Under the pieces are notes generated by a model. It did no database searches, was not told where the DNA came from, and saw only the letters and a list, made by a program, of their open reading frames with translations. The translations under genes and the position numbers were made by a program. A stretch of 64,000 bases of DNA from Octopus sinensis (taxonomy: Eukaryota): positions 18,786,001 through 18,850,000 of the forward strand of contig NC_043017.1 of NCBI RefSeq assembly GCF_006345805.1. Direction: 5' to 3'. Positions 2,700 to 52,260 of the stretch are shown one piece after another (the stretch's first letter is position 1; every line of letters begins with the position of its first letter).

Positions 2700-2990
2700 C
2701 AGAATTTCTTCTTTACTTCACTCTCTCTCCTTTATATTTGAACACATCAAAACAAACACATGTAGTAGAAAGAGGACACGACCTATACAACGTAGATGTT
2801 GTTTCTATCAATAATACTTACATATTAATACAGAGCCAATGACGAAGATGTCAGACAGGACGATGACAGCTTCAACACAACTTCTATATTTCACAAGAAA
2901 CCTTCATTTAGATTTTCATATCGTCTTAAAGACCGTTGAAGCGATTTCTGTCCACAGTTCATTAGCAACAACCATTTCTATTTAATTGGA
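2700..2990 (-). promoter_or_regulatory. Cluster-specific upstream cassette, part A (CCAAT/GTAAGT core), inverted copy
   Basis: Reverse complement of the GACATCTTCGTCATTGGCTCTGTATTAATATGTAAGTATT core found upstream of most ZNF genes. Regulatory role is inference. Confidence 0.55.
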
Positions 2991-3699
2991 TCCCCTAAAT
3001 GTTAGTTTTAAATTAGATCTGACCCAGTAATAAAGATGTTTATCAAACAACAGATTTAGTTCGTTTTAACAATAAACTGTAAGAACAACTAACTCTTTAT
3101 CTTTTTAAATATATCCTAGTCTGAAATCACCAAGCAGCACGGTGACCTTTTTCTGCAGGAAAATGTACCTCCCTGGCATTGGTGTTTATGAATGTGTGTG
3201 TATCTCTGTACAGATAGACCGCATAATCTGAAATTAATAATAAATACTTTATTTTAAAACTGAAAAACATGTGTCAATTTTACCCAAAATATGAAACCCC
3301 ATTGCTAAATATAATGGAATTCTGAAAATTTTATTTCATATATTAAAAAAAAAAGTACCCGAATATAATTCTGAATTAATTGAATTGGAGACAGAGAATT
3401 TATTCAGTCTGTACATATCTAAAGACTGAAAAGATAAGGGATATAATATAGGGCAGCGTTGTACGCTCCGTTAATTCCGTGTCGCAATTTTAAATTTTTG
3501 CCTTGAAATTTTTTTTTCTTCTCCAATTTGATACTGGAGTTAGCTCCCCTCACATATTATTTTTATAACGGGGCCTCCTCTGTTAATTTCTAGTAATTGT
3601 TTGATAAATGTGTTAGATCTAGTTAACAATTAACATTAAGGGTGTAGAGTACCCGCGGTGCCTGTTTGGATTGTCTCGGGGCTAAACATAAAAGCCGGC

Positions 3700-4569: not shown

Positions 4570-5390
4570 ACGAATGTTGTGAAATGTAGAAGTTGTGCTG
4601 AAGCTGTCATTGTCCAGTCTGAGTTGTGACTACTTGAATTTATCTTGACATCTTCGTCATTGGCTCTGTATTATTATGTAAGTATTATTGATAGAAACAA
4701 CATCTACGTTGTATAGGTCGTGTTCTCTTTCTACTACATGTGTTTGTTTTGCTGGTAGAATCGTTAGCACGCCGGGCGAAGTGCTTAGTAGTATTTCGTC
4801 TGCGGTTACGTTCTGAGTTCAAATTTCGCCGAGGTCGACTTTGCCTTTCATCCTTTCGGGATCGATTAAATAAGTACCAGTTACGCACTGGTGTCGATAT
4901 GATTGACTTAATCCGTTTGTCCCCTCTGTGTTTAGCCCCTTGTGGGTAGTAAAAGAAATAGTATTCTAATATAAAAAAAAGAAAGTAAAGAAAAAACTTT
5001 TTTTTACTGAAGTAACGATTTCTTAATCCCCATACGGGTCGGATGTTACATATGTAATAGAAGTGAGTTGAAAAACTTGCTTTACCTAACATTAACTATT
5101 GTTGTCTTAATACTTCCACTGTTCTTCTTTCCAATTAGCTTTTCAGTTATCGGTATTCCCCTATATCTTAACCTCAACTCAAAGAGAAAGTTTATATTTT
5201 TTAAGGTCAATTGTTTAGTCATCTTTACCTTTCTTTGTAGCATAAAAACTTGACAATTTTTGACCAACATCGTTAATTATAAATGATTTTGATGTGGTTA
5301 ATCAGAGATCGACATTAATTCTCTGCACCATCACAGAATCTGAAATAAATGATTAACAATATTTAAACAACAAATAAAAGTATCTGTGTA
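4570..5390 (+). promoter_or_regulatory. Upstream cassette (A+B) of ZNF-A, split by a SINE at 4749-4962
   Basis: Contains CTTCGTCATTGGCTCTGTATTATTATGTAAGT; the cassette sequence resumes after the SINE as in uninterrupted copies. Confidence 0.6.
4749..4962 (+). mobile_element. tRNA-derived SINE (family 2)
   Basis: B-box-like GTTCTGAGTTCAAATT followed by GAGGTCGACTTTGCCTTTCATCC; other copies at 62545 (+), 60270 (-) and 38640 (-). Confidence 0.75.
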
Positions 5391-10204: not shown

Positions 10205-11907
10205 ACCTAGTAAAGTGTGTCAGAGGATTTTGAATCTCCTCTGATAAAGAGATTTTTGATGCTGCAGTCAGCATGTTTAAGAACTACATCTTTATGCCAG
10301 GACCTAACACCTGCAAAAGGAAGAGCCACCGGGACGAAGTCAAACGTGTTATTCAAGGCCTCGATGTCAACAAGGGTCACGGCCCTGACGACATACACCC
10401 ACGGGTTATCAAAGCGTTGGCTCCAGTCATCTGCGAGCCCTTAACACGTCTATTCAATATGTCATTGGCAACGGGTGTTATACCTGCAGACTGGAGAACA
10501 GCGATAATCTGCCCAATTTTCAAGAAAGGGAGCCGCGAAGACCCGCTTAACTACCGACCGGTTTGCCTTACATCAATAATCAGCAAGATGTTCGAAACCA
10601 TCCTTAAGAAAAGTATGATGCTCCACCTCCAAAACACAGCCTCTATCTCTGATTCCCAACACGGCTTCATGCCGAAGAGATCATGCTTGACCAACTTACT
10701 GGTAATGGAAGAATTGGTGACGCGCATCCTCGATGATAGTGATGCTGTTGACATCGTTTTATTGGACTTTGCCAAAGCTTTTGACTTGGTAAACCACTGC
10801 CTATTACTTGTCAAGCTTCAAGCATACAGTTTCCATCCGGATATTGTACGATGGGTTGGTGCCTTCCTCTCAGATCGCTCCTTCCAAGTCCAAGTTAATG
10901 GTTCGCAGTCCGACGTCTCAAGTGTGAGCAGTGGTGTGCCTCAAGGTTCAGTGCTTGGGCCCTTGTTGTTCTTAGTCTTCATAAATGACTTGCCCGACGA
11001 CCTCACGCAACATACCCTTCTATTTGCCGACGATATCAAACTGGTCGCTCCTCGCGGTGATATAGAGGATCTTCGTCGATGCCTCCACCAAATTTGGAAG
11101 TGGTCTAACGAATGGGACCTGTGTCTGAACGTGTCAAAGTGCTGTCATCTGCCTCTTGGCTCTCCTCTTGCAACTCAACTTGATTTCGAGCCGGGTCGTC
11201 TGCTGCTGGAGAGGACCGATCAGGTAAAGGACCTGGGTAACTTGGTGGATTCCTCCTTTTCGCCTTCGGCCCAGTGCGTCCATGCTGCCAACAAAGCACG
11301 CGGAATTCTGTTCTTGATTCGACGGTCATTCGGAATGCTCACAGCAACCATATTCCTACCACTCTATGTCACGCTGGTGAGACCCATATTGGAGTACGGG
11401 ATTCAAGCCTCTTCTCCTTATCTCCTCAAAGACATACAGCATCTTGAAAGAGTCCAGAAGCTGGCTACCTGCATGGTTCATGGTCTCAAAAATTTATCCT
11501 ATGAAGAAAGGCTGAGGACGCTCGACCTTTATTCTCTTGAAAAACGCCGCCGCCATGGTGATCTCATTCTCACCCACAACATCATAAGCGGAAAGTGTAA
11601 CCTCTTGAAAGAGCTGTTCTTCACTCCTGCTCCAGAGAGTCAGCTGCGGGGTCATTCCGAAAAGCTCTACCTGCGACGATTTCATCTCAATCGAAGGAGA
11701 GGGGCTTTCTCCGTCCGGGTTGCGGATTCGTGGAACAAGCTGCCAGACGAGATGGTGAAGATGCCGACGACCGCTTTGTTCAAAGCCTCCCTTGACCTCA
11801 AGTGGCCTGAACTCTTTACATGAACACCACCCTGTACTTAACTCCATGTCCCCCTACATGGCCTTGCTATTTGCTTTTGAGCCAAATTAACTAACTAACT
11901 AACTAAT
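10205..11907 (+). mobile_element. CR1/L2-like LINE, 5'-truncated; intact 516-aa RT ORF (10273-11823) and (TAAC)n tail
   Basis: NYRPVCLTS, QHGFMPKRSCLTNL, LDFAKAFD, SGVPQGSVLGP, FADD, VRPILEY motifs; no endonuclease domain; TAACTAACTAACTAAC near 11888-11905. Confidence 0.93.
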
Positions 11908-17226: not shown

Positions 17227-18582
17227 TTACACTTCTATATGAATGCATACATGTGTAGTTAAGAAACGTTTCTGAGAGAATGATTTACCACAGATTTCAC
17301 AGCGATATGGCTTTTCTCTTTTATGAATGCGTTTGTGTTTAGTTAGGTCACAATTTTGAGAAAATGATTTATCACATATATCACAATGATACGGTTTCTC
17401 TCCTGTATGAATACGTTTGTGAGAAATTAATTCACCACTCTGACAAAATGACTTACCACATATATCACAATGATATGGTTTCTCTCCTGTATGAATACGT
17501 TTGTGTTTTGTTAAATCACCAGTTCTAGAGAATGATTTACCACAGATATCACACTGATATGGCCTCTCTCCTGTATGAATGCGTATGTGTTTAGTTAAGT
17601 CACTACTGCCGCAGAATGATTTACCACAGATATCACAATGATATGGCCTCTCGCCTGTATGAATGCGTTTGTGTTTAGTCAAGTCACCACTTCCAGAGAA
17701 TGATTTACCACAGACATCACAGTGATATGGTTTCTCTCCTGTATGAATACGTTTGTGCTTTGTCAAGTTAACACTTCCAGAGAATGATTTACCACAGATG
17801 TCACAGCAGAATGGCTTCTCTCCTGTATGAATGTATTTGTGTTTAGTTAAGTTACTACTCACACAGAATGATTTACCACAGATATCACAATGATATAGCT
17901 TCTCATTTGTATGAATACGTTTGTGTTTAGTTAAGTAACTTCCATCAGAAAATGATTTATCACAGATGTCACAGTGATGTGGCTTCTCCCCTGTATGAAT
18001 GCGCTTGTGTGTAGACAAGTGGTCGTTTCGAGAGAATGATTTTCCACAGATATCACAGTGATATGGCCTTTCACCTGTGTGAATATGTTTGTGTTTAGTT
18101 AAGTCATAATTTTGACAGAATGATTTCCCACAGATGTCACAGTGATATGGTTTCTCTCCTGTATGAATACGTCTGTGAGTAGTTAAGGCCCCATTTTCAG
18201 AGAATGATTTGCCACACATATCACAGTAATATGGCTTCTCTCCTGTATGAATGCGCTTATGTTTAGTTACAGCACTGGTCCCATAAGAGAATGATTTCCC
18301 ACAGATATCACAATGATATGGCTTCTCTCCTGTATGAGTGTACTTGTGTCTTGTTAAGTGACTGCTAGCATAAAATGACTGGCCACAGATGTTACAATGA
18401 TAGGATTTCTCTCCAGTATGAATACGTTTGTGAATATTTAGGTTATCTTTACGAGGAAACGACTTTTTACAGACATCACAGAGATATGGTTTTTTACCCT
18501 CCTTTTTTACGTCATCAGAAAAATCAATACTTTCAGACTCCGTTTCACATTTAACCTTGTTATCATATAATTCATTTTCCAT
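17227..18582 (-). CDS. C2H2 zinc-finger protein ZNF-B, 451 aa from first ATG (18582), 15 fingers
   Basis: 15 fingers (finger 3 has a 13-residue C-H spacer). ORF-track start at 18600 is GTG. Confidence 0.95.
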
Positions 18583-19135
18583 AATGTTTTCGTCTTTCAC
18601 TGTAGTATATACTTCAGGTCAATAAGATTACCCAAAAGTTCTGAGTTCAATCCCCACTAAATGCAGCAATTCAAAATCAACAGGGGGACACTTGACAGTC
18701 ATGATCTACACGGGCTGGATCCCTTCCAGTAACAAGAACCAATGGAACAAAATGCTTGATGGAAATTCTTCCTCTGAAGATGTCTACTGAAGCCTGCTCA
18801 TCCATTAATAAAATTCCACTTGCTATAGATGGTTTTCTTTAAATTGTTAGATTTCACTCCAAATAAATATTTCTTCTGCTATAATTCCATCAACTGTGAT
18901 CTTTGTTGATATTTGAAGATATTGCAAAGTCCTTTGTTATCCAATTTTAATTACAATATAAATTCATCTTCCACTCATTTCAGACAGTGAAACAGGGAAA
19001 TTTCACTGTTAATCTCAGTTCACAGCAAATATTTCACAGTAATTCTACAACAGAATTATATAAACAGGATTAAGTCTGTTCTGCATAATTTATTTTTGGT
19101 CTCCAAGTAACGAACTCAAGTAACTAATAATTCTT

Positions 19136-19175
19136 TTATGCCAATGTCATCTGATGTTCTGAAATAAAAGAGAAT
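19136..19175 (-). promoter_or_regulatory. Splice acceptor and micro-uORF (ATG ACA TTG GCA TAA, 19150 to 19136) of ZNF-B
   Basis: Minus strand CTTTTATTTCAG|AACATCAGATGACATTGGCATAA. Confidence 0.7.
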
Positions 19176-19879
19176 GAAATATAAAGAAACAGAGGATACA
19201 TAAAATTAAGATTACTACATTTTTTTTTATATTGATAAACGGTAGATGGAAATGTTTACCTGAAGAATGGAACTCGTCTAATATAGCCATTCCTTTTTAA
19301 GAGCAAAAGTTTACATACATACATAAATACATACACATATATACACACACGTACCCATTTTCTGAAGATACGATCAAGTAAGGCGAGGAGTTTTGTTTTT
19401 TTAATGCAAATTAGATGCGTTTCAGAATGTAATGACAAAACATAGCAAAAAAAATCATATTATTGGCGATTGTTTGTCAATAGACATGATGGGAGGAGGG
19501 GAGACGTTTGAAATACAAAATAAACCAGAACAAAAAAAAAAATGGAAAGATAGGCAAAATCTCGACCAAAACAGAGCCAGCAACGCCGAAAGTCCGTCCA
19601 AAAACTACGGAGTGAGACATGAGGGAGATATGGGGTTAAAAGACGAGATGGTGAGGGTTGGATCGCTTTCAAAAACAAACTGGGTGGGCATGATTGGAAC
19701 GTTTTAAAATGACATGATGGTCGTGTTTGGAAAGCTTCGAAAGACAGAAGGAGGACACAACACCTTTACAAAAGCGTGTTTCCGAACGTCCGCTAGCACA
19801 CATGTATGTGCACAAGCTTCATCAAATGCAAATCAGACCGATTATTTCCGAAGACTACACCTTTGAGTAATTATTCTGT

Positions 19880-20260
19880 GTAATTCTTGGAATATTCTTA
19901 AAAAACAATATGAAATGTCAGTGAAAGCAAGTTTTTTAACTCACTATATTACATATGATAAAAGCAACTTTAGTAAAATGTCTTCTCTTCTTCATTTTCT
20001 TTCCTTTGTCTTTGAACACATCAAAACAAATAGATGAAGCAGAAAAAGGACACATTATAAATGTTGATACTATTAATGATACTTACATATAGAATCAATG
20101 GCGAAGATGTCACAACTTGGACAACGACAGCTTCAACACTTCTACATTTTACAACAAACTTTCGTTTAGATTTTTACATAAAGAATGTTGTAGCTATTTC
20201 TTTCCACAGTTAATTAGCAATCATCTCTAATTTACTGGATTACCTAAATACAAATAATAA
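19880..20260 (-). promoter_or_regulatory. Upstream cassette part A of ZNF-B
   Basis: Reverse complement of the cassette core (ATACTTACATAT...CAATGGCGAAGATGTCAC). Confidence 0.55.
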
Positions 20261-20687
20261 ACTACATCTCACCCAGAAATAACAAGAAAATCTCGATCAA
20301 TTCTCCAAGTTGTTGGTAAAATTTAAATTAGAGTCACTCTTACTACTTCCGGTTATCAGAAGTATGGAAATCCATACGTATCCGCGCTAATTAATACTTG
20401 CAACCTCGTTCATCACTGACTCATTCAACACTCATCCTGGATAACACGGCACGCTTAATTGTAAACCATGTTATGTTTATCAAGGACTGATATGTGAAAA
20501 TACAGGTCAGGGATCAGTCGAAGATTCTGCTTGCACCGCAAAAAAATAATAAAATAAACCAACCTTCCCCTCCAGCAACCATCCCGCTGATGCTCAGCTA
20601 CCCAGAATGCACTGATTATCACTTGTGTTTACATGACCGTGTTGTGAGGCTGTGTATTTTTTAATACGGATTTATATACAGGAACCT

Positions 20688-22580
20688 ATGAACATGGGAC
20701 CAACGAAGAGAAACAATACGAAAGCACCCGATCTGAACAAACGACGTAGACGAGTGTATTCTTTACAGGAAAAAGTGGAGATGATCAAGAAAATATATGA
20801 CGGGGCAAGCTTCGCTGGTGTGGGCCGCGAGTTTGGTGTTAATGAATCCACCATTCGTTCCATTTACAAAGTGCGTGGAGATATAATGAATGCATTCACG
20901 GATGCTGCCCCTAGATCAGTGAATCGAATAGTCAGAGTACATAAAGATGCTTTTATTCAGCCCATGGAAAAGGGGGTTTATTTGTGGATGCAGGACTGTT
21001 ACAGTAAGCGGCTTCCTGTGTCAACAAAACGTATCCAGAATCGTGCTAAGCAAATATATAAGAGCTTGGTTGAGCTTAGTGATGTTGTTGATAAGGACAA
21101 ATATACTTTTCAGGGTAGCCGTGGGTGGGTACAGAAATTCATTAAACGATATAATTTAGCCAGCAAACTTGTTTCAGGTGATGCAACATCAGATGATACA
21201 GAGACAACTCGGCGTTATATTGAAGAAATTTATAAAATGATGAATGAGGGTGGATATTTACCGTGTCAAGTTTTTAATGCAGTTGAAACAGCCCTTTATT
21301 GGAAAAAGATGCCTGAAAAAAGTTACGTAGCGAAAGAAGAGGCCATGACGACGGGTTTTAAAGACGCTAAAGACCGTGTGTCTCTGTTGTTCTGTTGTAA
21401 CGGTTCTGGTGATTTTAAAGCTAAACCACTGCTTATACATCGTTCTGCCCGGCCTCGTCCTTTCCAGAACATTAGCATGTTAACTCTCCCTGTGCACTGG
21501 CGTGCTAATAAAAATGGGTGGATGACTAAAGGGGTTTTTGAAGAGTGGTTCATGACCCACTTCCGCGCTGAAGTGAAAGAATACTGTGCCACGAAGAATA
21601 TTTCTTTTAAAGCAATTCTTGTGTTAGACAATTGTCCTGGCTATTCTACAAACTTAAATGACATTCAGAATGAAATCAAAGTGATTTATTTACCGCCTAA
21701 CACTCAGTCATTGCTGCAACCTATGAACCAAGAAGTGATGGCCACATTTAAGCTTTTCTATCTTGACCATACCTTTGAGGATATACACAAGGCACTGGTG
21801 GACGATGAGGAACTGACTGTACGGCAATACTGGAAACGATTCAACATTCTACACGGTGTTCGCTTCATTGGCAAGGCTTGGCAAGCTGTAACTCAAGGAT
21901 GTCTTTTGAATGGATGGCGCAACTTATTGCCTGACACAACTCCAGACTTCGTTGGGTTTGAAGAGGATAACATGACTCGAGTTCTAAACATGGCAAAAGC
22001 ATTACCTGGGGATGGTTTTCAAGACCTCAATGAAAATGACATCTGGAATATGATGGAATCTCCTGAGCGAGAATTAAATGACACAGAGGTGTTGGAATTA
22101 GTCGACAAAAAACAAAATGACATAGGCACAGAGGACGATGACGGCGACTGTGTAGAATCTAGTCCAACATTAACCATGTCAAACCTAAAAAAAATAATGT
22201 CCTACTATGAGCAGTTGACTCAACTCATACAGGAAGCAGATCCAAGTTTTGAGAGAAAAGAATCTGTAACTGCCATTCTAGATCGTGGCATTGCACCCTA
22301 CAAAGAAATTTATAGGGAACGACAGGCATTAAATAAGCAGTCGATGATAACTCCTCTCTTTGGCAGTTTTTCTGGTTCTCCAGCACCGCAGAAAGAAGAG
22401 CCGGTATCCAGCCGTTATGGAGCTCTCACTATTAGGTCTTCTACACCTCGTATCCAAGTCAATAACATTGACCCTGACTCTAAACCAGACTTCTCAGGCA
22501 TTCTCTCTCTACCACAATCAGCTCCAACAAATAACGATGACAACACAGAAGATGAAGATGACGATCCCAACCTCGTCTAA
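20688..22580 (+). CDS. Tigger/pogo (TIGD-like) transposase-derived ORF, 630 aa: CENP-B-type HTH plus DDE domain with altered catalytic residues
   Basis: YSLQEKVEMI, FGVNESTIRSI, FQGSRGWVQKFIKRY, VFNAVETALYWKKMP, FKDAKDRVSLLFCCN, LVLDNCPGY, PPNTQSLLQPMNQ. No stops or frameshifts. First ATG 20688 follows TATACAG; track start is GTG. Confidence 0.9.
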   Translation: MNMGPTKRNNTKAPDLNKRRRRVYSLQEKVEMIKKIYDGASFAGVGREFGVNESTIRSIYKVRGDIMNAFTDAAPRSVNRIVRVHKDAFIQPMEKGVYLWMQDCYSKRLPVSTKRIQNRAKQIYKSLVELSDVVDKDKYTFQGSRGWVQKFIKRYNLASKLVSGDATSDDTETTRRYIEEIYKMMNEGGYLPCQVFNAVETALYWKKMPEKSYVAKEEAMTTGFKDAKDRVSLLFCCNGSGDFKAKPLLIHRSARPRPFQNISMLTLPVHWRANKNGWMTKGVFEEWFMTHFRAEVKEYCATKNISFKAILVLDNCPGYSTNLNDIQNEIKVIYLPPNTQSLLQPMNQEVMATFKLFYLDHTFEDIHKALVDDEELTVRQYWKRFNILHGVRFIGKAWQAVTQGCLLNGWRNLLPDTTPDFVGFEEDNMTRVLNMAKALPGDGFQDLNENDIWNMMESPERELNDTEVLELVDKKQNDIGTEDDDGDCVESSPTLTMSNLKKIMSYYEQLTQLIQEADPSFERKESVTAILDRGIAPYKEIYRERQALNKQSMITPLFGSFSGSPAPQKEEPVSSRYGALTIRSSTPRIQVNNIDPDSKPDFSGILSLPQSAPTNNDDNTEDEDDDPNLV

Positions 22581-22969
22581 CTCCAGCACACCTTCCTACA
22601 TTACACTAACTCAGTGGAATCCGTAAGTGTTATATTTTTCACGGTTACATTTTTTCTTTTGTACTGATCGTATGTAATTAAATTTTATTATTTTATTCCA
22701 ACCATTAAACAAAATTATTATGTATGTTTAAAGACTGTTTGGGTGTGTTGGAGTCTCTGAACGAAAAACTATTTTCCCGATGTATTCTATTATTCATTTG
22801 TCATCGATTCATTCAACACGTTTATATTCATCTTTTTTTCTACGGCCACCCGTGATCAACAAAGATCAATGTAGTTACATTACAGTCTTCCTTCCAAGAA
22901 AAGAATGTTGAAAATAATTGTTGAAATATAATCACCAATGTCAGGGAAAAGCATGTTTCGAGGCAGCCA

Positions 22970-24170
22970 TAATAAAAGATTACCCTGTTTGGCGATGAGG
23001 ACGGTAATAACAAGGAGGAAGAGTTACTAAATCTACGTCCTTTAGAAGATAAAATATATGAAAGAGACCAGGATATATTTAAAGACTTACATTGAATCTA
23101 GAGAGAGTTAGTTATTCTGAGAGTTTATTATTATATATAATTCTGTTGATTCCCTCTTACTGTTTTATAAACACCTTTATCACAGGGTCAGAAGGTGATT
23201 GAATTAGAGATGATTGTTGCTAATTAACTGTGGAAAGAAATAGCTACAACATTCTTGATTATGTTAATGTGAAAGTACGAGTTAGTAGTCCTGTAAATTT
23301 TTAAACTATTGGCTCTTTCTCCTTACTAAAACTTTTTCAAAGCCTCTGATTCCGCGTAATATCAGGGCTGAGTAATTTAGTTCCGGGTACTATTTTGACA
23401 CAAGGAACTATATTACTATTGCACGCACTATAAGTAACTATTTAATGATGACACCGCTTTATCTTCATTAATGACACAAATCTTCGGATCAGGATTTCCT
23501 CCAAACTCTGGTTATTATTGTTGTGATTGTGGGGTAAATCATTTTAAAGTTAATACTTTAATAAGAAACAAACCTTAAAAAAAAAATTTGTACAGATACA
23601 TCTCTCACCCCTTATTTCTCTATTTCTGATAGAAATTGTCCACATTAACCCCAGTAGTTTTACCGTCCCTTGGGGGAAATATTGATATAAATGAAGGTTT
23701 ATTGTAAAATATAGAAGTTGTGTTAAAGCTGTCATTGTCCAGTCTGAGTTGTGACTATTTGAATCTATCGTGACATCTTCGTCATTGGCTCTATATTAAT
23801 ATGTAAGTTTTTTTTTTTTTAATAGAACATCTACATTATATAGGTCGTGTCTTTCTACTTCATCTGTTTGTTTTAATGTGTCCAAAGATAAAGGAAGGAA
23901 AGTGAAGAAGAGAAAGAATTTTCTTCAAGTAACGATGCTGTCTTAATCCCCATACGGGTTGGCTGTCACATATGTAATATAGTGAACTGAAAAACTTGCT
24001 TTAACTGACATTACCTATTGTTGTCTGAATACTTTGTTTTCCTTTCCACTCTGCATTCCAATTATCGTTATTCCCCCAATATCTTAATGTTAACTCAAAG
24101 AGAAAGTATTTCTTAAGGTGAATACACTGTTTAGTCACCATTTACCTTTATTTATAACATCGGGCCTACT
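22970..24170 (+). promoter_or_regulatory. Upstream cassette (extended A0 + A + B) of ZNF-C
   Basis: 22970-23280 aligns with 39150-39490; 23690-24170 aligns with the cassette core and part B. Confidence 0.55.
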
Positions 24171-24290
24171 TTCTTCTGTACAAGCCCCTTGTTGACACGG
24201 TATTGTAGATCAATGGCTTCGGTTTAAACGTTGACATTTTCTGTTTTTCGTTTATTTCCACAATATTTTTAAATAATTTATACTATTTCT

Positions 24291-24320
24291 CTTGTTTCAG
24301 AATATCGTATGACATGGCGA
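24291..24320 (+). promoter_or_regulatory. Splice acceptor of ZNF-C (AG ends 24300); uATG at 24309
   Basis: CTTGTTTCAG|AATATCGTATGACATGG. Confidence 0.65.
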
Positions 24321-24649
24321 CGAAAAGCGCACCACCACCACTCAAGCATCTATATCATCTTTTAACGACAAATTGAAATTGTGATGAAGAACAGATATAA
24401 GCCTCTTTTTTATTACTGGAGTAAGTAATTACTAATAACAGATTATCTGTAAGATTTTCCTACTTTACCGTACAAGATGATTTATATATTTTGATTAAAC
24501 TTACACTACATAGGAGTTTGTGGTAACTTCAAATCTCAACAAGGGTCACAGTTGAGTGAAATAATAGCAGAAGAAATATTTGTTAAGAATAAAATATAAA
24601 ACCAAAACTAACAGAACCATTTGAACATTGTGGTGAGGATCAGAAAATT

Positions 24650-25660
24650 ATGGAAAGGAAATTATATGAGAACAAGTCTGAAACCCAATCTAAACAGATT
24701 AGTTTCCCTGGTGACATAAATGAAGAGAGAGAAAAAACATATCAATGTGATATCTGTAAGAAGACATTCTCTGTAAAATATAACCTAACTAGTCACAAAC
24801 GTATTCATACAGGAGAAAAACCGCACAAGTGTGACATCTGTGGTATATCATTCTGTAGGAGTAATGATTTAACCAAACACATACGTATTCATACAGGGGA
24901 GAAGCCATATCACTGTGATATCTGTGGTAAATCATTCTCTAGGAGTGATCAGTTAACAACTCACAAACATATTCATTCAGGAAACAAACCATATCAGTGC
25001 AGCATCTGTGGTAAATCATTCTCCTTAAGTGGTCACTTAAATCTTCACATACGGATTCATACAGGAGAGAAGCCATACCATTGTGATGTCTGTGGTAAAT
25101 CATTCTCTAGGAATGATCAATTAACTATTCACAAACGTAATCATACTGGAAACAAACCATATCACTGCAGTATCTGTGGTAAATCATTCATTATAAGTAG
25201 TCACTTAAATCAACACATACTTATTCATACAGAAGAGAAACCGTATCATTGTGAAATTTGTGGTAAATCATTCTCTGATAGAAGACATTTAACAGTGCAC
25301 AAACGTTTTCACACAGGAGAGAAACCATATCACTGTGATATCTGTGATAAATCATTCTATGTAAATAGTGCCTTAACTGCACACAGGCGTATTCATACAG
25401 GAGAGAAACCATATCACTGTGAGATCTGTGGTAAATCATTCTCTGTAAATAGTGCCTTAACTACTCACAAACGTATTCATACTGGAGAGAAGCCATATCA
25501 GTGCAGTATCTGTGGTAAATCATTCTCTGATGGAAGACATTTAAGAGTACATACACGTGTTCATACAGGAGAGAAGCCATATCACTGCAATGTCTGTGGT
25601 AAATCATTCTCTCAAAAATCGAACTTAACCACTCATACCATTACTCATGCCAAACAGTAA
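24650..25660 (+). CDS. C2H2 zinc-finger protein ZNF-C, 336 aa, 11 fingers
   Basis: 11 canonical fingers; intact ORF. Confidence 0.95.
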
Positions 25661-25961
25661 CTGTATCAATGTCAGAATTCACATTTTGTTAAATAAAGTA
25701 CAGTGTGGATATTAATTTTTGTTGATCAGTTATATTTTTTTTTCTTTTCTCTTATTTGTGTAATTACTAATCTTATTGAACTTTCACAATATGCGCAAAG
25801 TGTCGCTCACATGGTAAATATCAATATTTATAAATTTTTGGTGAGGATGCTTTCTCTTGTGGCTGGTAAAAGGCACAATTCAGTGTTTGTCATAAATTTT
25901 GTTTATAAATTTCAGTTTTTGTTATTCACAATATTTGAAAAATTATTAGGTACAGCAACAA

Positions 25962-26170
25962 TCATCATCATTTAATGTCTATTGTCCATGCTGGCATGGG
26001 CTGGACGGCTTAACCAGAGCTGAGGGGCTGCATCAGACTCCAGTCTGACTTGGCATGGTTTCTGCAGCTGGGTGCCCTTCCTAATGCCAACCACTCCGAG
26101 AGCATAATAGGTGCTTTTACGTGTCACTGGGACAGGTGCCAGTTTTGTAACACCGGTTTCTGCTATGACT
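25962..26170 (-). mobile_element. RTE-tail SINE
   Basis: ATCATCATCATTTAATGTCTATTGTCCATGCTGGCATGGG... is the reverse complement of the consensus. Confidence 0.75.
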
Positions 26171-26344
26171 AGAAAGATGAAATGTTTTCTACAAAGATGA
26201 AATGTTTTTACCAAGAACATCAAAATTCTGTGTATGAAGATGAGACACAACCCTAAATGTATTCCAGACATCAAAGATGTAACTGTGTAATAAGAATTTT
26301 GCAACACCATATTTTTAGCTACACTGATGTTGCTTCCAGTATTG

Positions 26345-29680: not shown

Positions 29681-30234
29681 TCAGCCGTTTTGCCTGTGGG
29701 GTCCAACATTCAAAAGATGTTCTTTATGTACCACCAGGGGTGCACTTGGCTTGATGAATGGAACCTGTGGAAGAGAGAGTCCAAGATAGACATAGGACGA
29801 AGGAACAAAGATTGATCTCAAGAAGGTGAACCTTACAAAGGATTGTGACATGTGGTGACATACTGTGCAGAAGATGAGCAACAAGTGATGTAGTATAGTA
29901 AGATCAGTGATGCTGACGTGACTGGAATATCTGGCAGTAAATAATAAGACTTGCGGAGAATATACTCAACATTCCACTTACATCAACTGAATTAGCAGCA
30001 GTGAAGATGTCCTTATGTCCATTAATTATAAACAGTTTGTATTTCTGACGTCTGGAAAGTATTAGCGGTATATTTAGAACAACATGACCAGAGTGAAACT
30101 TCATTACAAACTCAAACACTATTCTTAAGTGAAGGAGAACAGAGCTGCCATTAAGTTTGAAGAATATGGAAGGGAGACTTTATAATACCAACTGGTCTAT
30201 CACTGAGACTGTCTTCATATCTAACATAACAGTA

Positions 30235-30710
30235 GAGAGTCATTCATCCAGATGTGATTGCAATGTCTTGTATTAAATAGTAAGAATTTCCTGAGAATGT
30301 TACATCTACACAAGTAAATTAGCAGTAAAGTTTTTGTCCTTATGTCCATTAATTATAAATTGTGTTCCTGACATCTGGAAAGTATTACTGGTATATTTCC
30401 ATCAACAAGACCAAAGTCTTGTTTTGTTACCAAAGAAGCTACATTAACACTGCTCTCTACCATTTATGGGTGGTGGATAGCATATTTGGTATTAAGTTAC
30501 ATCCATATATGTTCTCGGTTCAAATCCCACTACATTGGTCTTTATCTTTGTTGTAGATTGAATCCATCCAGAACTTCCCCAAAATGTGTGGCCTTGAGCG
30601 AATGTTAGTAATTAATATTTATTAATTAATGCTTGTCATTTGTAATCCAACGATTTGCTAGAAATACTGGAATTCTTGATTTAATTGTTGGCATTATTTA
30701 GTTTTGTCCA
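30235..30710 (-). repeat. Copy of window positions 1-492 (degenerate LINE fragment)
   Basis: Collinear near-identity with 1-492. A third partial copy of one segment lies at ~30005-30075. Confidence 0.85.
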
Positions 30711-30959
30711 TCTACTTTGTGATTTCGATTCCTACCAGGGCCTGCTGATCCTTTTATTTACTTTGGAGTTAATGAAGTACCGGTAATGCCGTGGTTCGCT
30801 ATAATTATTTTCTTTAGACTGCCTCTCGCTTGGCTACCATCAACCTATTGGTTACATCACATCTTTACTACATAACCACCATCGTTAGCATTTAATGTAT
30901 AAAGTTATCTTATCATTCATCTCTCATTCACTTCATCATAACCTATAATATCTAATTGT

Positions 30960-31222
30960 TGTGTTCTTGAGCAAGGCACTTTATTTTCACGTTGCTCCAG
31001 TTCACTCAACTGTAGAAATGAGTTGCGACGTCACAGGTGCCAAGCTGTATCAGCCTTTGTCTTTCCCTTGGATAACACTGGTGGCGTGGAGAGGGGAGGC
31101 TGGTATGCATGGGCGACTGCTGGTCTTCCATAAACAACCTTGCCCGGACTTGTGTCTAGGAGGGTAACTTTCTAGGTGCAATCCCATGGTCATTCATGAC
31201 CGAAGGGGGTCTTTACCCCCTT
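30960..31222 (+). mobile_element. SINE family 3
   Basis: CTTGAGCAAGGCACTTTATTTTCACGTTGCTCCAGTTCACTCAACTG core; reverse fragments at 7968 and ~14090-14165. Confidence 0.6.
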
Positions 31223-32302
31223 TACTATCAAATAATGTCAACAAATTATATAAATACAAAGTAAGCATCTTTGAAGATCAGTTTGGAAAATGTGTAACTT
31301 TTATCAGACATTGATCAAGTCTGTGAATTCTGTAGTTTATGGTTGTGTCAGGACAAGTTTTGGTTAAATGTTCTACATTTAGAATAACAGGAGAATAATT
31401 GAAGAGCAACACCACATTTATTTCAATTTCAGGTAATTAAGAATATTTACAAAGAATGTCTTGTGTAACAGACATATCAAACCCATACCATCATGTAGAA
31501 TGGACAATAAAACACTGATGACTATGATGATGATTCACAAATTACGTCATTCATTTTGCATTTATATCAAGTTTAAGGTTACATTCATACTTGCAAATAA
31601 ACATTCAGTTTAACCCTCAAGTCATGAAGGAATCATACTAGAAATAAAAGAAATGATAAAACTGTAGAAATCAAAACCAACATCAGAATTGGTCCCTTGG
31701 TGGGATATATCCATAATAACATTTAAACCAGGATATATGTAAGATACATGAAACAATGTATAGAAGATGCAGAATACATAACATAGGGAGAGAAATGTCC
31801 AGAAGCTAAAGCTATCAGATTGTGAACCACACGGTTGGTAACATACAGAGCTAGAGAAGATACATGCATGGATGCTAGGAGGGCAAAATGGATGTTAATC
31901 TGTTGCCAGACATGGAGACTATGCTGTATATCTGTATTTTGGAATTTTGTTAAGTGTCCATTTACTGTCCCAGGTCACTGTGTAAAGTGATTGGTGTTAG
32001 AATGAATTGCCATCCATGATTACAGTGTCTAAATAAATGAGCAAGAAGGATCCTTGAAACATCTTCAGAGACTGTAAAATCAAATGTAGAAACAGTTGGA
32101 GTTTCAAAGAGTGCAGAATCCAAGGTAGCTTGGAAATGAGATATCAAATGATGATGATGGTGATGATGACACCAGTCTATGATTTCTAACATTTTAAGTG
32201 ATGTTATAACAAGATTGAAGAGAATATGTGTCTCAGTAATTTACTCATAATGTCAAATAAATAAAGTGTGTGCTTTCTCTCTTCTGGAAATAAATCAAAT
32301 GA

Positions 32303-37319: not shown

Positions 37320-38060
37320 AAACAACAATAAGTAATGTCAGCTAAAGCAAGTTTTTCAACTCACTTCTATTACATATATGACAGCCGACACGTATGGGGA
37401 TTAAGACAACATCGTTACTTTAGGAAAATTTCTTCACTTTCTTTGAACACATCAAAACAAACAGGTGCAGTAGGAAAATGACAGAATTTATACAATGTAG
37501 GTGTTGTTTCTATTAATAATACTTACATATTAATACAGAGCCAATGACGGAGATGTCACAATATATTCAAGTTGTCGCAACTCAGACTGGACAGCACATT
37601 TACATTTTACAATAAACCTTTCTTTATATTTCCACACCAGCATAATAAAGATTGCTGTAGCTGTTTCTTTCCGCAGTTAATTAGCAATCATCCAGTAATT
37701 AACCTCTATATTTAATTAATTTGTTCAGTTGATGGAATCTCCGCAATATTACTTCCGTCTCTTCAAATCCAAAAAACATCAGTTTTGTCTTTCTTTCTGA
37801 ATAGATAAAATCGAGTTCCAGTAAAGTGCCGGAGTCGATATGAAGGAATAATGACATTCCCTAATATTTCAGGTTTTGCGTTTTTAACAGAAATGATACT
37901 AACACTGGCCACTGTGTGGAAGGTACCTATTATTTCTTTACACCGCTTAAATAATTAGTACCATCCTTGCATTGGTGTGTTGTAATTATGTTCATTTGAC
38001 GTAAAAACGATTATGGTAATTAAGACGATCTTCAATTTTAGATAGATCATTTAGATACGT
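37320..38060 (-). promoter_or_regulatory. Upstream cassette A plus flank for ZNF-E; inverted copy of 45170-45975
   Basis: Near-identical reverse complement of 45170-45975 and of 51120-51700. Confidence 0.65.
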
Positions 38061-39149: not shown

Positions 39150-39735
39150 AAAGATTACCTTGTTTGTATAAAGCGGAATAAGATATAAAGTAACCAAAGG
39201 TATTTAATAGAGAAGATGAAGAATGATCAATTCTACGTCTTTTAGATGGAAAATATAAAGTAGATCAGGATATATATATAAAGACTTGTGTCGAAGCTAG
39301 AGATGAGATAGTTGTTATGACAGTTTATTGTTAGAAATTGCGAAATAATTCTGTTGGTTCTCTGCTATTGTTGGATAAACATCTTTATTACTGGATCTGA
39401 TCTAGTTTACAACAGGCAATTACGTGATACAATTAATTAGAAATGATTGCTAATTAATTGTGAGAAGAAATAGCTACAGCAATATTTATTATGTCGAAGT
39501 GAAAAATCTAAATGAAATTTTGTTGTAAAATATAGAAGTTGCGTTAAAGCTGTCGTTGTCCAGTATGAGTTTGAATCTATGGTGACATCTTCGTCATTGG
39601 CTCTATATCAATATGTAAGTATTGATAGAAGCAACATCAACATTGTATAGGTCGTGTCCTCTTTCTACTACATCTGTTTGTTTGGATGTGTTCAAAGATT
39701 ATAGAAAGAAAGTGAAGAAGAGAAGAAATTTTGGT
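39150..39735 (+). promoter_or_regulatory. Upstream cassette A0 + A of ZNF-F, cut by a repeat insertion at ~39735
   Basis: Core GACATCTTCGTCATTGGCTCTATATCAATATGTAAGT at ~39585-39622. Confidence 0.55.
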
Positions 39736-45169: not shown

Positions 45170-46500
45170 TCGGCGATCTTACGGTCGATCTATCTAAAAC
45201 TGAACATCGTTTTAATTACCATAATCGTTTTTACGTCAAATGGAAATAATTATAAGCATACCAATGCAAGGATGGTACTAATTATTTAAGCGGTGTAAAG
45301 AAATAACAGGTACCTTCCTCACGGTGGTCAGTGTTATTATTCCTAATAAAAACGCAAACCTGAAATATTAGGGAAGGTCATTGTTGGATCATATCGACTC
45401 CAGCTTAACCCTAACCCTCCATATATAAAAAAAACAACACTTTCTTGAAATGTATCCGGTATTTATTCAGAAAGGAAGAAAGACAAAACTGATGTTGTTT
45501 GGATTTGAAGAGACGGAAGTAATATTGCGGAGAATTTTCTTCGCTGCTCAACGATTCTGCCAACTGAACAAATTTATTAAATATAGAGGTTAATTACTGG
45601 ATGATTGCTAATTAACTGCGGTAAGAAACAGCTACAGCAATCTTTATTATGTTGGTGTGGAAATATAAAGGAAGGTTTATTGTAAAATGTAAATGTGCCG
45701 TCCAGTCTGAATTGCGACAACTTGAATATATTGTGACATCTCCGTCATTGGCTCTGTATTAATATGTAAGTATTATTAATAGAAACAACACCTACATTGT
45801 ATAAATTCTGTCATTTTCCTACTGCACCTGTTTGTTTTGATGTGTTCAAAGAAAGTGAAGAAATTTTCCTAAAGTAACGATGTTGTCTTAATCCCCATAC
45901 GTGTCGGCTGTCATATATGTAATAGAAGTGAGTTGAAAAACTTGCTTTAGCTGACATTACTTATTGTTGTCTTAATACTTACAGTTTTCCTTTCCACTCT
46001 GCATTCCAATCATCGTTATTTCCCCATATCTTAATATTAATAAGAAAGAGAAAGTTTGTATTTTTTAGGTCACTTCTATACATTGTTTAGTCACCGTTTA
46101 CCTTTTTCTTAAGAAATAAACTTGACAACTTTTATTCTCAAATTTAAAGTGATTTTGATGTTGATTCTCAAAAATCGATGATAATTATCGATAGTCTAGC
46201 TAATAATTACAGCGGATAAAATTGATTCCCAATTAAAATGAAAGAAGAAGAAAAAAACAGACGTATTAAAAGTGTTAATAAAACTTTTCCAAAACTTTCA
46301 TTTAAAGAGCTAAATATATTTTTGTGCCTTATTCACAAACAGCAAATCTTGTAATCTCTATGAGATAGTTGTAGATTCCTCATGGATAAATACACAATCT
46401 ACTATGATATATGAGAAACAAGCAACAGAAATGTTATGTCAAACACTAACAAATGACTAAACATCAACTTTTTACTTTGATTCTTGTTTTTATTTGTGAT
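45170..46500 (+). promoter_or_regulatory. Upstream cassette (flank + A + B) of ZNF-G
   Basis: Most complete cassette copy; direct duplicate at 51120-52260. Confidence 0.65.
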
Positions 46501-51119: not shown

Positions 51120-52260
51120 ATTTGAAGATCGTCTTAATACTATGATTGTTTTTACGTCAAATGAACATAATTACAACACACCAATGCAAGGATGGTATTA
51201 ATTATTTAAGCGGTGTAAAGAAATAACAGGTACCTTCCTCACGGTGGTCAGCGTTATCTCTCTATATATAAATGGCAAAATGTCTGCGTGTGTGTCCTTC
51301 ATACAAATCCACAATTAATAGATGATTGCTAATTAACGGCAGAAAGAAACAGCGACAGCAATCTTTATTATGCTGGTGCGGAAATATAAAGAAAGGTTTA
51401 TTGTAAAATGTAAATGTGCTGTCCAGTCCGAGTTGCGACAACTTGAATATATTGTGACATCTCCGTCATTGGCTCTGTATTAATATGTAAGTATTATTAA
51501 TAGAAACAACATCTACATTGTATAAATTCTGTCATTTTCCTACTGCACCTGTTTGTTTTGATGTGTTCAAAGAAAGAAGAAAGAGAGTGAAGAAATTTCC
51601 TAAAGTAACAATGTTGTCTTAATCCCCTGTCACATATGTAATAGAAGTGAGTTGAAAAACTTGCTTTAGCTGACATTACTTATTGTTGTTTTAATACGGA
51701 AAGATACTTCCACTGTTTTCCTTTCCACACTCCTTTTCAGTTATCGCTATTCCCCCATATCTTAATATCAATGCAAAGAGAAAGTGTATTTCTTAAGTCA
51801 CTGTAACACATTGTTTAGCCACCATTTACCTTTATTTCTAAGAAATAAACTTGACTACTTTTGTCCAACATTGCTAATTGAAAATGATATTAATGTTGAT
51901 AGTCAAAGGTCAATGATAATTATCGATAGTCCAGCTGATAATTACAACGAACAAAACTGATGTCCAATGAAAATAAGCAAAATAGGTATTAAAGCTGCTG
52001 ATAAAACTTCCCAAAAACTTTTGTTTAAAGAGGTAAGCTGATCCAGTCTAATATATTTTATTTGTATTTAGAAACAGCAAATCCTGTAATCTCTATGAGA
52101 CAGTTGTAGATTCCTCATGGATAAAGATACAAGCTACTATGATATATTAGAAACAAGCAACAGAAATGTTATGTCAAACACCTACAAATAAGTAAGCATC
52201 AACTTTTTATATTGTGGCCTGTTTTTATTTGTGATTTCGTATTTGTTTTCTCACTTGTTA
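51120..52260 (+). repeat. Orphan copy of the upstream cassette (no ZNF exon downstream)
   Basis: Collinear with 45190-46520; followed by an RTE LINE instead of intron and acceptor. Confidence 0.8.

Follow-up and report, generated by a model that had tools for sequence, protein, structure and literature searches.

A Tigger-derived gene with two substituted catalytic aspartates, probably domesticated as an immobile host gene within a zinc-finger cluster of Octopus

Many cases are on record in which vertebrates, yeasts or insects have domesticated a pogo/Tigger transposase, but to our knowledge molluscs have scarcely been studied gene by gene in this respect. Here we analyse a 64,000-nucleotide stretch of the Octopus sinensis genome (assembly GCF_006345805.1, contig NC_043017.1, positions 18,786,001 to 18,850,000 of the forward strand; hereafter ‘the window’, whose coordinates are used throughout) and the longest open reading frame (ORF) in it, a Tigger-type transposase ORF at 20688–22580 on the plus strand in which two of the three catalytic aspartates have been replaced. 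The evidence makes it very likely that a Tigger transposon landed between zinc-finger (ZNF) gene units, lost its ends and these two catalytic aspartates, and is now an immobile host gene under selection whose product would act as a DNA-binding chromatin or transcription factor.

The closest described counterparts are the vertebrate genes JRK, JRKL, TIGD2, TIGD5 and TIGD7, which belong to the same Tigger family as the octopus gene and share its CENP-B_N, HTH_Tnp_Tc5 and DDE_1 domains. These genes are stationary and single-exon-like, with ratios of non-synonymous to synonymous substitution rates (Ka/Ks) of 0.06–0.21 (Gao et al., 2020, PMC7386202), similar to the 0.14–0.27 (here given as dN/dS) that we find for the octopus gene. 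The spacing between the last two catalytic positions is 32 residues in JRK as it is in octopus, and partial loss of the triad has occurred in some of the vertebrate genes as well, for instance in TIGD2 (DD34S; PMC7386202). The octopus event is nevertheless an independent one, the identity to any vertebrate Tigger protein being 30–39%, and the octopus gene differs from the vertebrate genes in lacking two of the three aspartates, in its much younger age and narrower distribution, and in lying inside a ZNF cluster together with which it has been duplicated. A second comparison is offered by CENP-B and its independent analogues, known from mammals, fission yeast (Abp1, Cbh1 and Cbh2) and Lepidoptera (PMC4231638). 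As with CENP-B, the octopus protein appears from its sequence to be a pogo-like transposase turned DNA-binding protein that has kept an inactive Asp-Asp-Glu (DDE) domain, and in a fold search its N-terminal part matches the CENP-B–DNA complex 1hlv. The likeness is limited to the domain architecture and this N-terminal fold; the C-terminus differs, and the ancestry of CENP-B lies in the pogoR branch rather than in Tigger (PMC7386202).

The O. bimaculoides orthologue (XP_014768235 / LOC106867769) has been listed, without being characterised, under the class ‘HTH-PSQ’ in a supplementary table of a cross-phylum catalogue of transposon-derived ‘HTH-Psq / CENPB’ factors, which reports Ka/Ks at the level of families and whose main text does not contain the word ‘catalytic’ (Mukherjee and Moroz, 2023, PMC10027918). 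As opposed to the analysis presented here, the catalogue includes neither the synteny of the octopus gene nor the history of its paralogue nor an analysis of its ends, and we found no citation of the accession XP_014768235 beyond it in the literature searched.

The NCBI annotation of the same genome (GCA_006345805.1, chromosome CM016879.1) carries exactly the 630-residue product of the ORF, which sits inside the span of a larger minus-strand gene model. The frame is open from its first ATG and Pfam recognises both DNA-binding domains and the transposase core within it, bearing out the original prediction of an open Tigger ORF of 630 codons. Direct reading of the codons places valine at the first catalytic position (V199, GTT at 21282–21284, in the context QVFNAVET), aspartate at the second (D314, GAC at 21627–21629, LVLDNCPGY) and asparagine at the third (N347, AAC at 21726–21728, LQPMNQEV). 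When the protein was aligned with 11 and then with 29 relatives, these columns coincided with the catalytic D, D and D of the relatives (QVFNADET, LDNAPGH and LQPMDQG), and 19 of the 26 non-octopus sequences in the 30-sequence alignment have D-D-D there. The triad of the octopus ORF is V-D-N, not D-D-D, and the original reading of the two replacements proved correct; each is a single base away from an Asp codon (GAY to GTT, GAY to AAC). The 32 residues that separate positions 314 and 347 fall inside the DD29–36D range by which the Tigger family is defined (PMC7386202), and the best database relatives of the protein are all of Tigger type. Judged by these sequence features, the ORF belongs by descent to the Tigger family of the pogo superfamily.

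The gene sits at one and the same chromosomal site, with collinear flanks, in O. sinensis, O. vulgaris and O. bimaculoides, so that the synteny proposed as a check when the ORF was first noted is found in both sister species. Clustering of proteins at 90% identity groups five models, namely the window product, two models from O. bimaculoides and two from O. vulgaris. At the O. vulgaris A locus (L005; OX597834.1 at 23.0 Mb), where more than 20 kb align collinearly to the window at 97.5–99.4% identity, the encoded protein is identical to that of the window and the ORF shows one silent difference. The O. bimaculoides locus (L004; CM046621.1 at 37.8 Mb) was reached via the newer gene model P0042, an exact-protein look-up of XP_014768235 having returned no contig; its ORF is 95% identical and the locus is collinear from window position 18859 to at least 24902 (L004 8098–14445). 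A frameshift in this ORF was considered and rejected: the only interruption is an assembly gap, a run of Ns at about 11726–11737, and the older model XP_014768235 (P0001) is intact over 624 residues. Duplicated sequence lies on both sides of this gap, inside the tail of the ORF. A fourth lineage is represented by two Logan contigs from an octopod (hereafter the Logan octopod), whose 87% identical protein is intact from the ATG equivalent to 20694.

The fifth copy, O. vulgaris B (L006; OX597834.1 at 3.29 Mb), is likewise intact (627 residues, 94.8% identical) and owes its existence to segmental duplication rather than transposition, because its homology with the window extends over both flanking ZNF units (18852–26310) and resumes at 30013–31458. 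The duplicated unit comprises ZNF(-)/Tigger(+)/ZNF(+) and more, at least about 12 kb in all, and its two copies lie 20 Mb apart on one O. vulgaris chromosome. By silent divergence (dS 0.08 for the duplication versus 0.15 for the O. bimaculoides split) the duplication took place later than the split from O. bimaculoides. In all five copies, which represent four lineages, the frame is unbroken and the triad is V-D-N; none retains the D-D-D triad of an autonomous Tigger transposon. The gene is thus stationary and intact in every copy examined, and the only duplication seen is a segmental one that carried the neighbouring ZNF genes along.

Pairwise dN/dS ratios, computed by the method of Nei and Gojobori (NG86) with bootstrap limits, revealed purifying selection on the protein. 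For O. sinensis the ratio is 0.14 against O. bimaculoides, 0.24 against the Logan octopod and 0.25 against the paralogue, and the remaining pairs give 0.19–0.27; all values are clearly below 1, with bootstrap upper limits of at most 0.46. When substitutions were assigned to branches by parsimony, replacements were depleted on every branch (all p<0.03) relative to a neutral replacement:silent expectation of about 3.7:1, the counts being 4:10 on the window lineage since the duplication, 15:11 on the O. vulgaris B paralogue, 12:9 on the branch between the A+B pair and the O. bimaculoides/Logan pair, 9:23 in O. bimaculoides and 50:51 in the Logan octopod. Constraint is strongest on the two helix-turn-helix (HTH) domains, above all on CENP-B_N (dN/dS 0.03–0.13), the most constrained part of the protein, followed by HTH_Tnp_Tc5 (0.08–0.26), and it extends to the dead catalytic core (0.15–0.25 between species) and to the predicted disordered tail (0.10–0.35).

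The maintenance of the reading frame points the same way. When the observed differences were scattered at random, the frame stayed open in none of 2000 trials, in 4% and in 8% in three comparisons; ORF identity is 0.953 and 0.969 compared to 0.90–0.94 in the flanks; and indels within the ORF are all multiples of three, whereas about 10% of the columns in the flanks are gaps. Between O. sinensis and O. vulgaris we counted one substitution in the 1893 nucleotides of the ORF as opposed to 0.96% and 1.5% in the two 5-kb stretches that border it. The single-copy upstream flank is 91–93% identical to its counterparts in O. bimaculoides and the O. vulgaris B copy and 82% identical to that of the Logan octopod, with one substitution in 455 nucleotides relative to O. 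vulgaris. Since the copies are orthologous and immobile, the constraint reflects selection at the level of the host and not selection among transposon copies. We also observed that silent sites of the ORF are themselves unusually conserved between O. sinensis and O. vulgaris (one difference), and that the whole of 19108–22707 (3.6 kb, including 1.5 kb upstream of the ORF) differs from L005 by only 5 substitutions, compared to 1–3% in neighbouring sequence.

The transposon ends can no longer be recognised. Local alignment of 20100–20700 with the reverse complement of 22561–23300 yielded no terminal inverted repeats (TIRs) above shuffle level, the best inverted match outside the neighbouring repeats scoring 27, which is the 95th percentile of shuffles; the earlier statement that clean TIRs are missing therefore stands. 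Neither were TIRs with a TA target duplication, which mark an autonomous Tigger, found at the window locus. Two candidates for end signals were discarded: arms of 60 nucleotides matching at 93% (20173–20232 and 23202–23267) are the ends of a repeat, termed R, of the neighbouring units, and a 26-nucleotide direct repeat at 20406 and 22794 (77%) is no stronger than pairs expected by chance. What looks like a large inverted repeat surrounds the ORF, with arms at about 18531–20232 and 23202–24683, because repeat R and a ZNF-upstream block belong to the ZNF units: by BLAST, each arm is composed of a block found beside every ZNF exon of the window together with repeat R, which lies 1–2 kb upstream of each. 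The arms are hence the upstream halves of two ZNF gene units, and what remains between them is a single-copy stretch of about 2.8 kb (20233–23014) that carries the Tigger gene and has the size of a Tigger element. No second copy of the family was detected in the window by tblastn, nor does the window hold dispersed copies with common ends, and the one paralogue found shares host flanks.

The field recognises stationary domesticated transposases by a position that is fixed, the loss of their ends, purifying selection and a low copy number (PMC7386202), and by these criteria the octopus gene is very likely one of them. The earlier proposal that it is a domesticated host gene draws support from its synteny, the shared V-D-N triad, the dN/dS ratios, the segmental nature of the only duplication seen and the scarcity of close relatives.

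The architecture of the protein was assessed from Pfam domain calls, an AlphaFold model and fold searches with that model. The DDE_1 match spans the whole length of the Pfam model. The AlphaFold model has a mean predicted local distance difference test (pLDDT) score of 74, and in the core, at pLDDT 80–96, strands and helices are at the expected places: V199 is modelled on the first strand of the RNase-H-like sheet, D314 closes a later strand, and a long helix begins at N347. The top fold matches of the core are the catalytic domains of Mos1, Metnase/SETMAR and Sleeping Beauty, which are Tc1/mariner-type transposases; whole-chain template modelling (TM) scores of the fold matches are low as a result of the flexible linkage between domains. 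Searched by sequence, the PDB offered nothing beyond a weak match of the HTH, with the CENP-B-type domain 2elh from the fly. The C-terminal pair of helices (residues 497–517 and 521–558, both modelled at pLDDT of about 90) is common to other Tigger transposases and to a lobster relative described below.

These features suggest how the gene may have arisen and how its product may work. In an ancestor of Octopus, a Tigger element would have inserted between two head-to-head C2H2 ZNF gene units; its terminal repeats would then have been lost and its transposase changed by D199V and D347N, after which it would have been inherited as an ordinary, immobile host gene. The protein is predicted to enter the nucleus via its basic N-terminus, where a KRRRR stretch lies just N-terminal to the CENP-B_N domain, and to bind specific DNA through its bipartite HTH region, the most conserved part. 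It would neither cut nor join DNA, because DDE/DDD enzymes require every carboxylate to hold two metal ions; by analogy with all such enzymes studied, metal-dependent cleavage is expected to have gone with D199 and D347. That the core and the helices of residues 497–558 have stayed under selection suggests a structural or partner-binding role for these parts, so that the retained RNase-H-like core and C-terminal helices may serve as a scaffold for dimerisation or for partner binding. We infer a role as chromatin or transcription factor comparable to that of CENP-B, JRK and the TIGD proteins.

Translation probably starts at the ATG at 20694 and not at the first ATG of the ORF, since the former is universal and has a good Kozak context: it is kept in all copies, with A at -3 and G at +4, and the first ATG reads ATC in the Logan octopod. 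The original prediction had pointed to a candidate splice acceptor, TATACAG, upstream of the ORF. This motif does end at 20681, but its AG (20680–20681) occurs only in the O. sinensis/O. vulgaris A copy and reads TC, TT and TC in the other three lineages, so that it is no conserved acceptor. A 5′ exon spliced into 20682 was accordingly rejected, the AG not being conserved and the Logan contigs running collinear across the site. Further upstream, an ETS-like ACTTCCGG motif at about 20340–20360 is conserved; both O. bimaculoides and the O. vulgaris B copy have it twice. At 20418 and 20430, 60–70 nucleotides downstream of the motif, lie the starts of the two Logan contigs. The ACTTCCGG region is a possible core promoter.

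Several observations weigh against the interpretation of the gene as a domesticated, DNA-binding host factor. Both Logan contigs follow the genome without a break in collinearity, lack poly(A) and end in repeat-like sequence, and are thus probably genomic DNA that provides no evidence of transcription. For O. vulgaris and O. bimaculoides, the gene models differ in how the gene ends on the 3′ side. Only modest divergences separate the copies compared (dS 0.08–0.27) and the B paralogue is more relaxed, with its 15:11 count and a dN/dS of 0.60 in DDE_1 relative to copy A. Lastly, the distribution is narrow, being confined to octopods among the sequences reachable: besides the Logan octopod, three named species of Octopus were found to have the gene, and no protein of 62–87% identity was found.

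Some of the same features could be explained without any service to the host. A young transposon copy that is decaying neutrally and has yet to acquire a stop codon, an alternative that the original prediction had itself raised, could bear catalytic changes that are each one base away from an Asp codon, and many animal ‘TIGD1-like’ annotations are such copies (PMC7386202). We reject this explanation as highly improbable on the grounds of orthology, dN/dS and frame survival: V-D-N and the open frame are common to copies that differ by dS 0.08–0.27, the ratios of 0.14–0.27 and the 0–8% of random trials that leave the frame open are not those of neutral decay, ORF indels are in frame only and the position is orthologous in three species; gene conversion within a genome, moreover, is inapplicable to comparisons between species. 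It is hardly more credible that the ORF belongs to a mobile, non-autonomous Tigger whose frame was kept by selection at the transposon level while an active relative moved it in trans. A relative with D-D-D does exist in P0004, a protein of marine or metagenomic source, yet it is only 47% identical, and no close cephalopod relative with D-D-D is present among about 15 billion proteins. An element of this kind should have TIRs, which are lacking here, and should not be found at the same site in three species or in paralogues that share about 12 kb or more of host flank, nor would it have reason to keep its own protein under purifying selection.

Two further explanations bear on the make-up of the gene and on the target of its product. 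The ORF might not be a gene of its own but supply the large 5′ exon of a transcript that reads through into, or is fused with, the downstream ZNF unit, yielding a transposase–ZNF chimera of the POGZ/POGK kind. Both P0042 (O. bimaculoides RefSeq XP_052831396) and P0043 (O. vulgaris) leave the ORF at the GT at 22404. P0042 splices from residue 572 over the assembly gap into a ZNF exon about 8 kb away, and P0043 passes through a 94-nucleotide intron to a GTAAGT donor at 22625 and thence to a last exon at 24302–24373, inside the upstream region of the right-hand ZNF. This GTAAGT (22625–22630), a consensus splice donor located 44 nucleotides past the stop codon, is kept in the Logan octopod. Yet the run of Ns lies a few codons past the P0042 donor, which may have forced the model, and the splice across it is probably an annotation artefact. 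The tail that both models skip (residues 573–630) stays in frame in all copies, at dN/dS 0.10–0.35, and the NCBI model of O. sinensis as well as the older O. bimaculoides model are single-exon, leaving the fusion an unlikely prospect. We regard it as similarly doubtful that the protein is kept not as a regulator of host genes but as a repressor of related Tigger elements, occupying their ends or poisoning multimers. Both DNA-binding domains and the pairing core of the transposase are retained, as such an activity would demand, and there is precedent in the KP protein, which represses P elements in this fashion, and in the fission-yeast CENP-B homologues, which restrain retrotransposons. However, neither the window nor about 100 kb of the sister loci contain a related active element or a miniature inverted-repeat transposable element (MITE), and the protein collections hold no close cephalopod relative, so that a present-day target of repression is not evident.

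Beyond the octopods, close relatives are few among the about 15 billion proteins. A HMMER scan of 1.84 billion representatives returned 13,008 relatives, the best representative past the octopod cluster being 35% identical among the matches listed. Word-indexed protein and profile searches retrieved a lobster protein at 62% and the metagenome protein P0004, with an intact D-D-D triad, at 47% identity; the rest were at 39% or less, with nothing above 39% in other molluscs or other decapods, and a profile search with the octopus, lobster and P0004 sequences added no further close relatives. The lobster protein (Homarus americanus P0003, ‘tigger transposable element-derived protein 1-like’) aligns over 99% of the length and is encoded by an intact ORF of 642 residues (L007 6001–7929, JAHLQT010039062.1), at one locus in the annotation. 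Akin to the octopus gene, it is full-length including the C-terminal helices and lacks the first catalytic aspartate, where it has serine (TCC in place of the octopus GTT); as opposed to the octopus V-D-N, its S-D-D triad keeps the third. A GTAAGT likewise follows its stop codon, at a distance of 64 nucleotides (L007 7993–7998). The lobster flanks are unrelated to those of octopus and silent sites are nearly saturated, with a proportion of synonymous differences (pS) of 0.68; in neither the lobster locus nor the 2.2-kb metagenome contig did we find convincing TIRs, and neither resembles the octopus flanks at the nucleotide level.

This patchy distribution suggests that the Tigger lineage passed between marine invertebrates long ago and was afterwards inactivated separately, although vertical descent of the octopus and lobster genes with many losses is possible. 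A bolder scenario is that the two genes are survivors of a single old cross-phylum marine Tigger lineage, each having lost the first aspartate on its own and having been retained by its host, and that the octopus gene, residing in a ZNF duplication unit, may be co-transcribed or spliced with a ZNF gene as a cephalopod parallel to POGZ/POGK; in this full form we consider it rather improbable.

The features of the locus are collected in Table 1. As the original prediction had it, the window is a C2H2 ZNF cluster: domain tests on 9 of its 12 ORFs of at least 150 residues identified ZNF arrays in 7, and the two ZNF exons that flank the Tigger ORF diverge, each pointing outward. Repeat R, which apparently belongs to the unit in which the ZNF genes were duplicated (as promoter, 5′ exon or intron), is present at 2703–3096, 4575–5243, 19898–20232 and 23015–24157, with further copies at 37320–37692, 39215–39732, 45600–46105 and 51320–51841. 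Elsewhere in the window, at 10331–11907, lies a 1.58-kb, 5′-truncated non-long-terminal-repeat (non-LTR) retrotransposon with a reverse transcriptase ORF (10273–11823) and a (TAAC)n end. The orthologous site of O. vulgaris lacks it and, still empty, reads gaagagccacc/ataaagtc (the slash marking the insertion point); its insertion is therefore younger than the species split and its family recently active.

Table 1. Features of the Tigger-derived gene and its surroundings (window coordinates; aa, amino acid residues; UTR, untranslated region).
Feature	Position	Strand	Basis and remarks
Tigger-derived gene, complete ORF	20688–22580	+	630 codons; conserved start probably the third codon, ATG 20694
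CENP-B_N / psq-type HTH, first DNA-binding domain	20739–20885	+	Pfam, aa 18–66, E 8.5e-9
HTH_Tnp_Tc5, second DNA-binding domain	20964–21167	+	Pfam, aa 93–160, E 6.6e-12
RNase-H-like transposase core	21255–21917	+	aa about 190–410; Pfam DDE_1 aa 228–410, E 5.7e-43
C-terminal pair of long helices, DP..ER motif	22176–22361	+	aa 497–558; alignments, AlphaFold model
Ser/Pro-rich, acidic tail, predicted disordered	22362–22577	+	aa 559–630; pLDDT <50
Single-copy upstream flank, probably promoter and 5′UTR	20233–20687	+	unique in window; no TIR
Single-copy downstream flank	22581–23014	+	unique in window; GTAAGT at 22625; no TIR
Left arm of inverted pair	18601–20232	-	upstream part of ZNF unit: ZNF-upstream block and repeat R truncated at 20232
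Right arm of inverted pair	23015–24649	+	upstream part of neighbouring ZNF unit; holds last exon 24302–24373 of P0043
C2H2 ZNF array exon, left neighbour	17227–18600	-	Pfam zf-C2H2, 13 stretches; points away from Tigger gene
C2H2 ZNF array exon, right neighbour	24650–25660	+	Pfam zf-C2H2, 11 stretches; annotated 336-aa product

The octopus Tigger gene is a well-supported addition to the known cases of transposase domestication, not a surprising one, and it overturns no expectation. Its value lies in being a clean case, with a fixed position, lost ends, a dead active site and purifying selection, and a dated example of the retention of a transposase after catalysis was lost. The expansion of C2H2-ZNF genes is a hallmark of octopus genomes, and the gene lies within this expansion and has been copied along with those genes. 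It is a tractable candidate for the contribution that lineage-specific DNA-binding proteins may make to cephalopod gene regulation.

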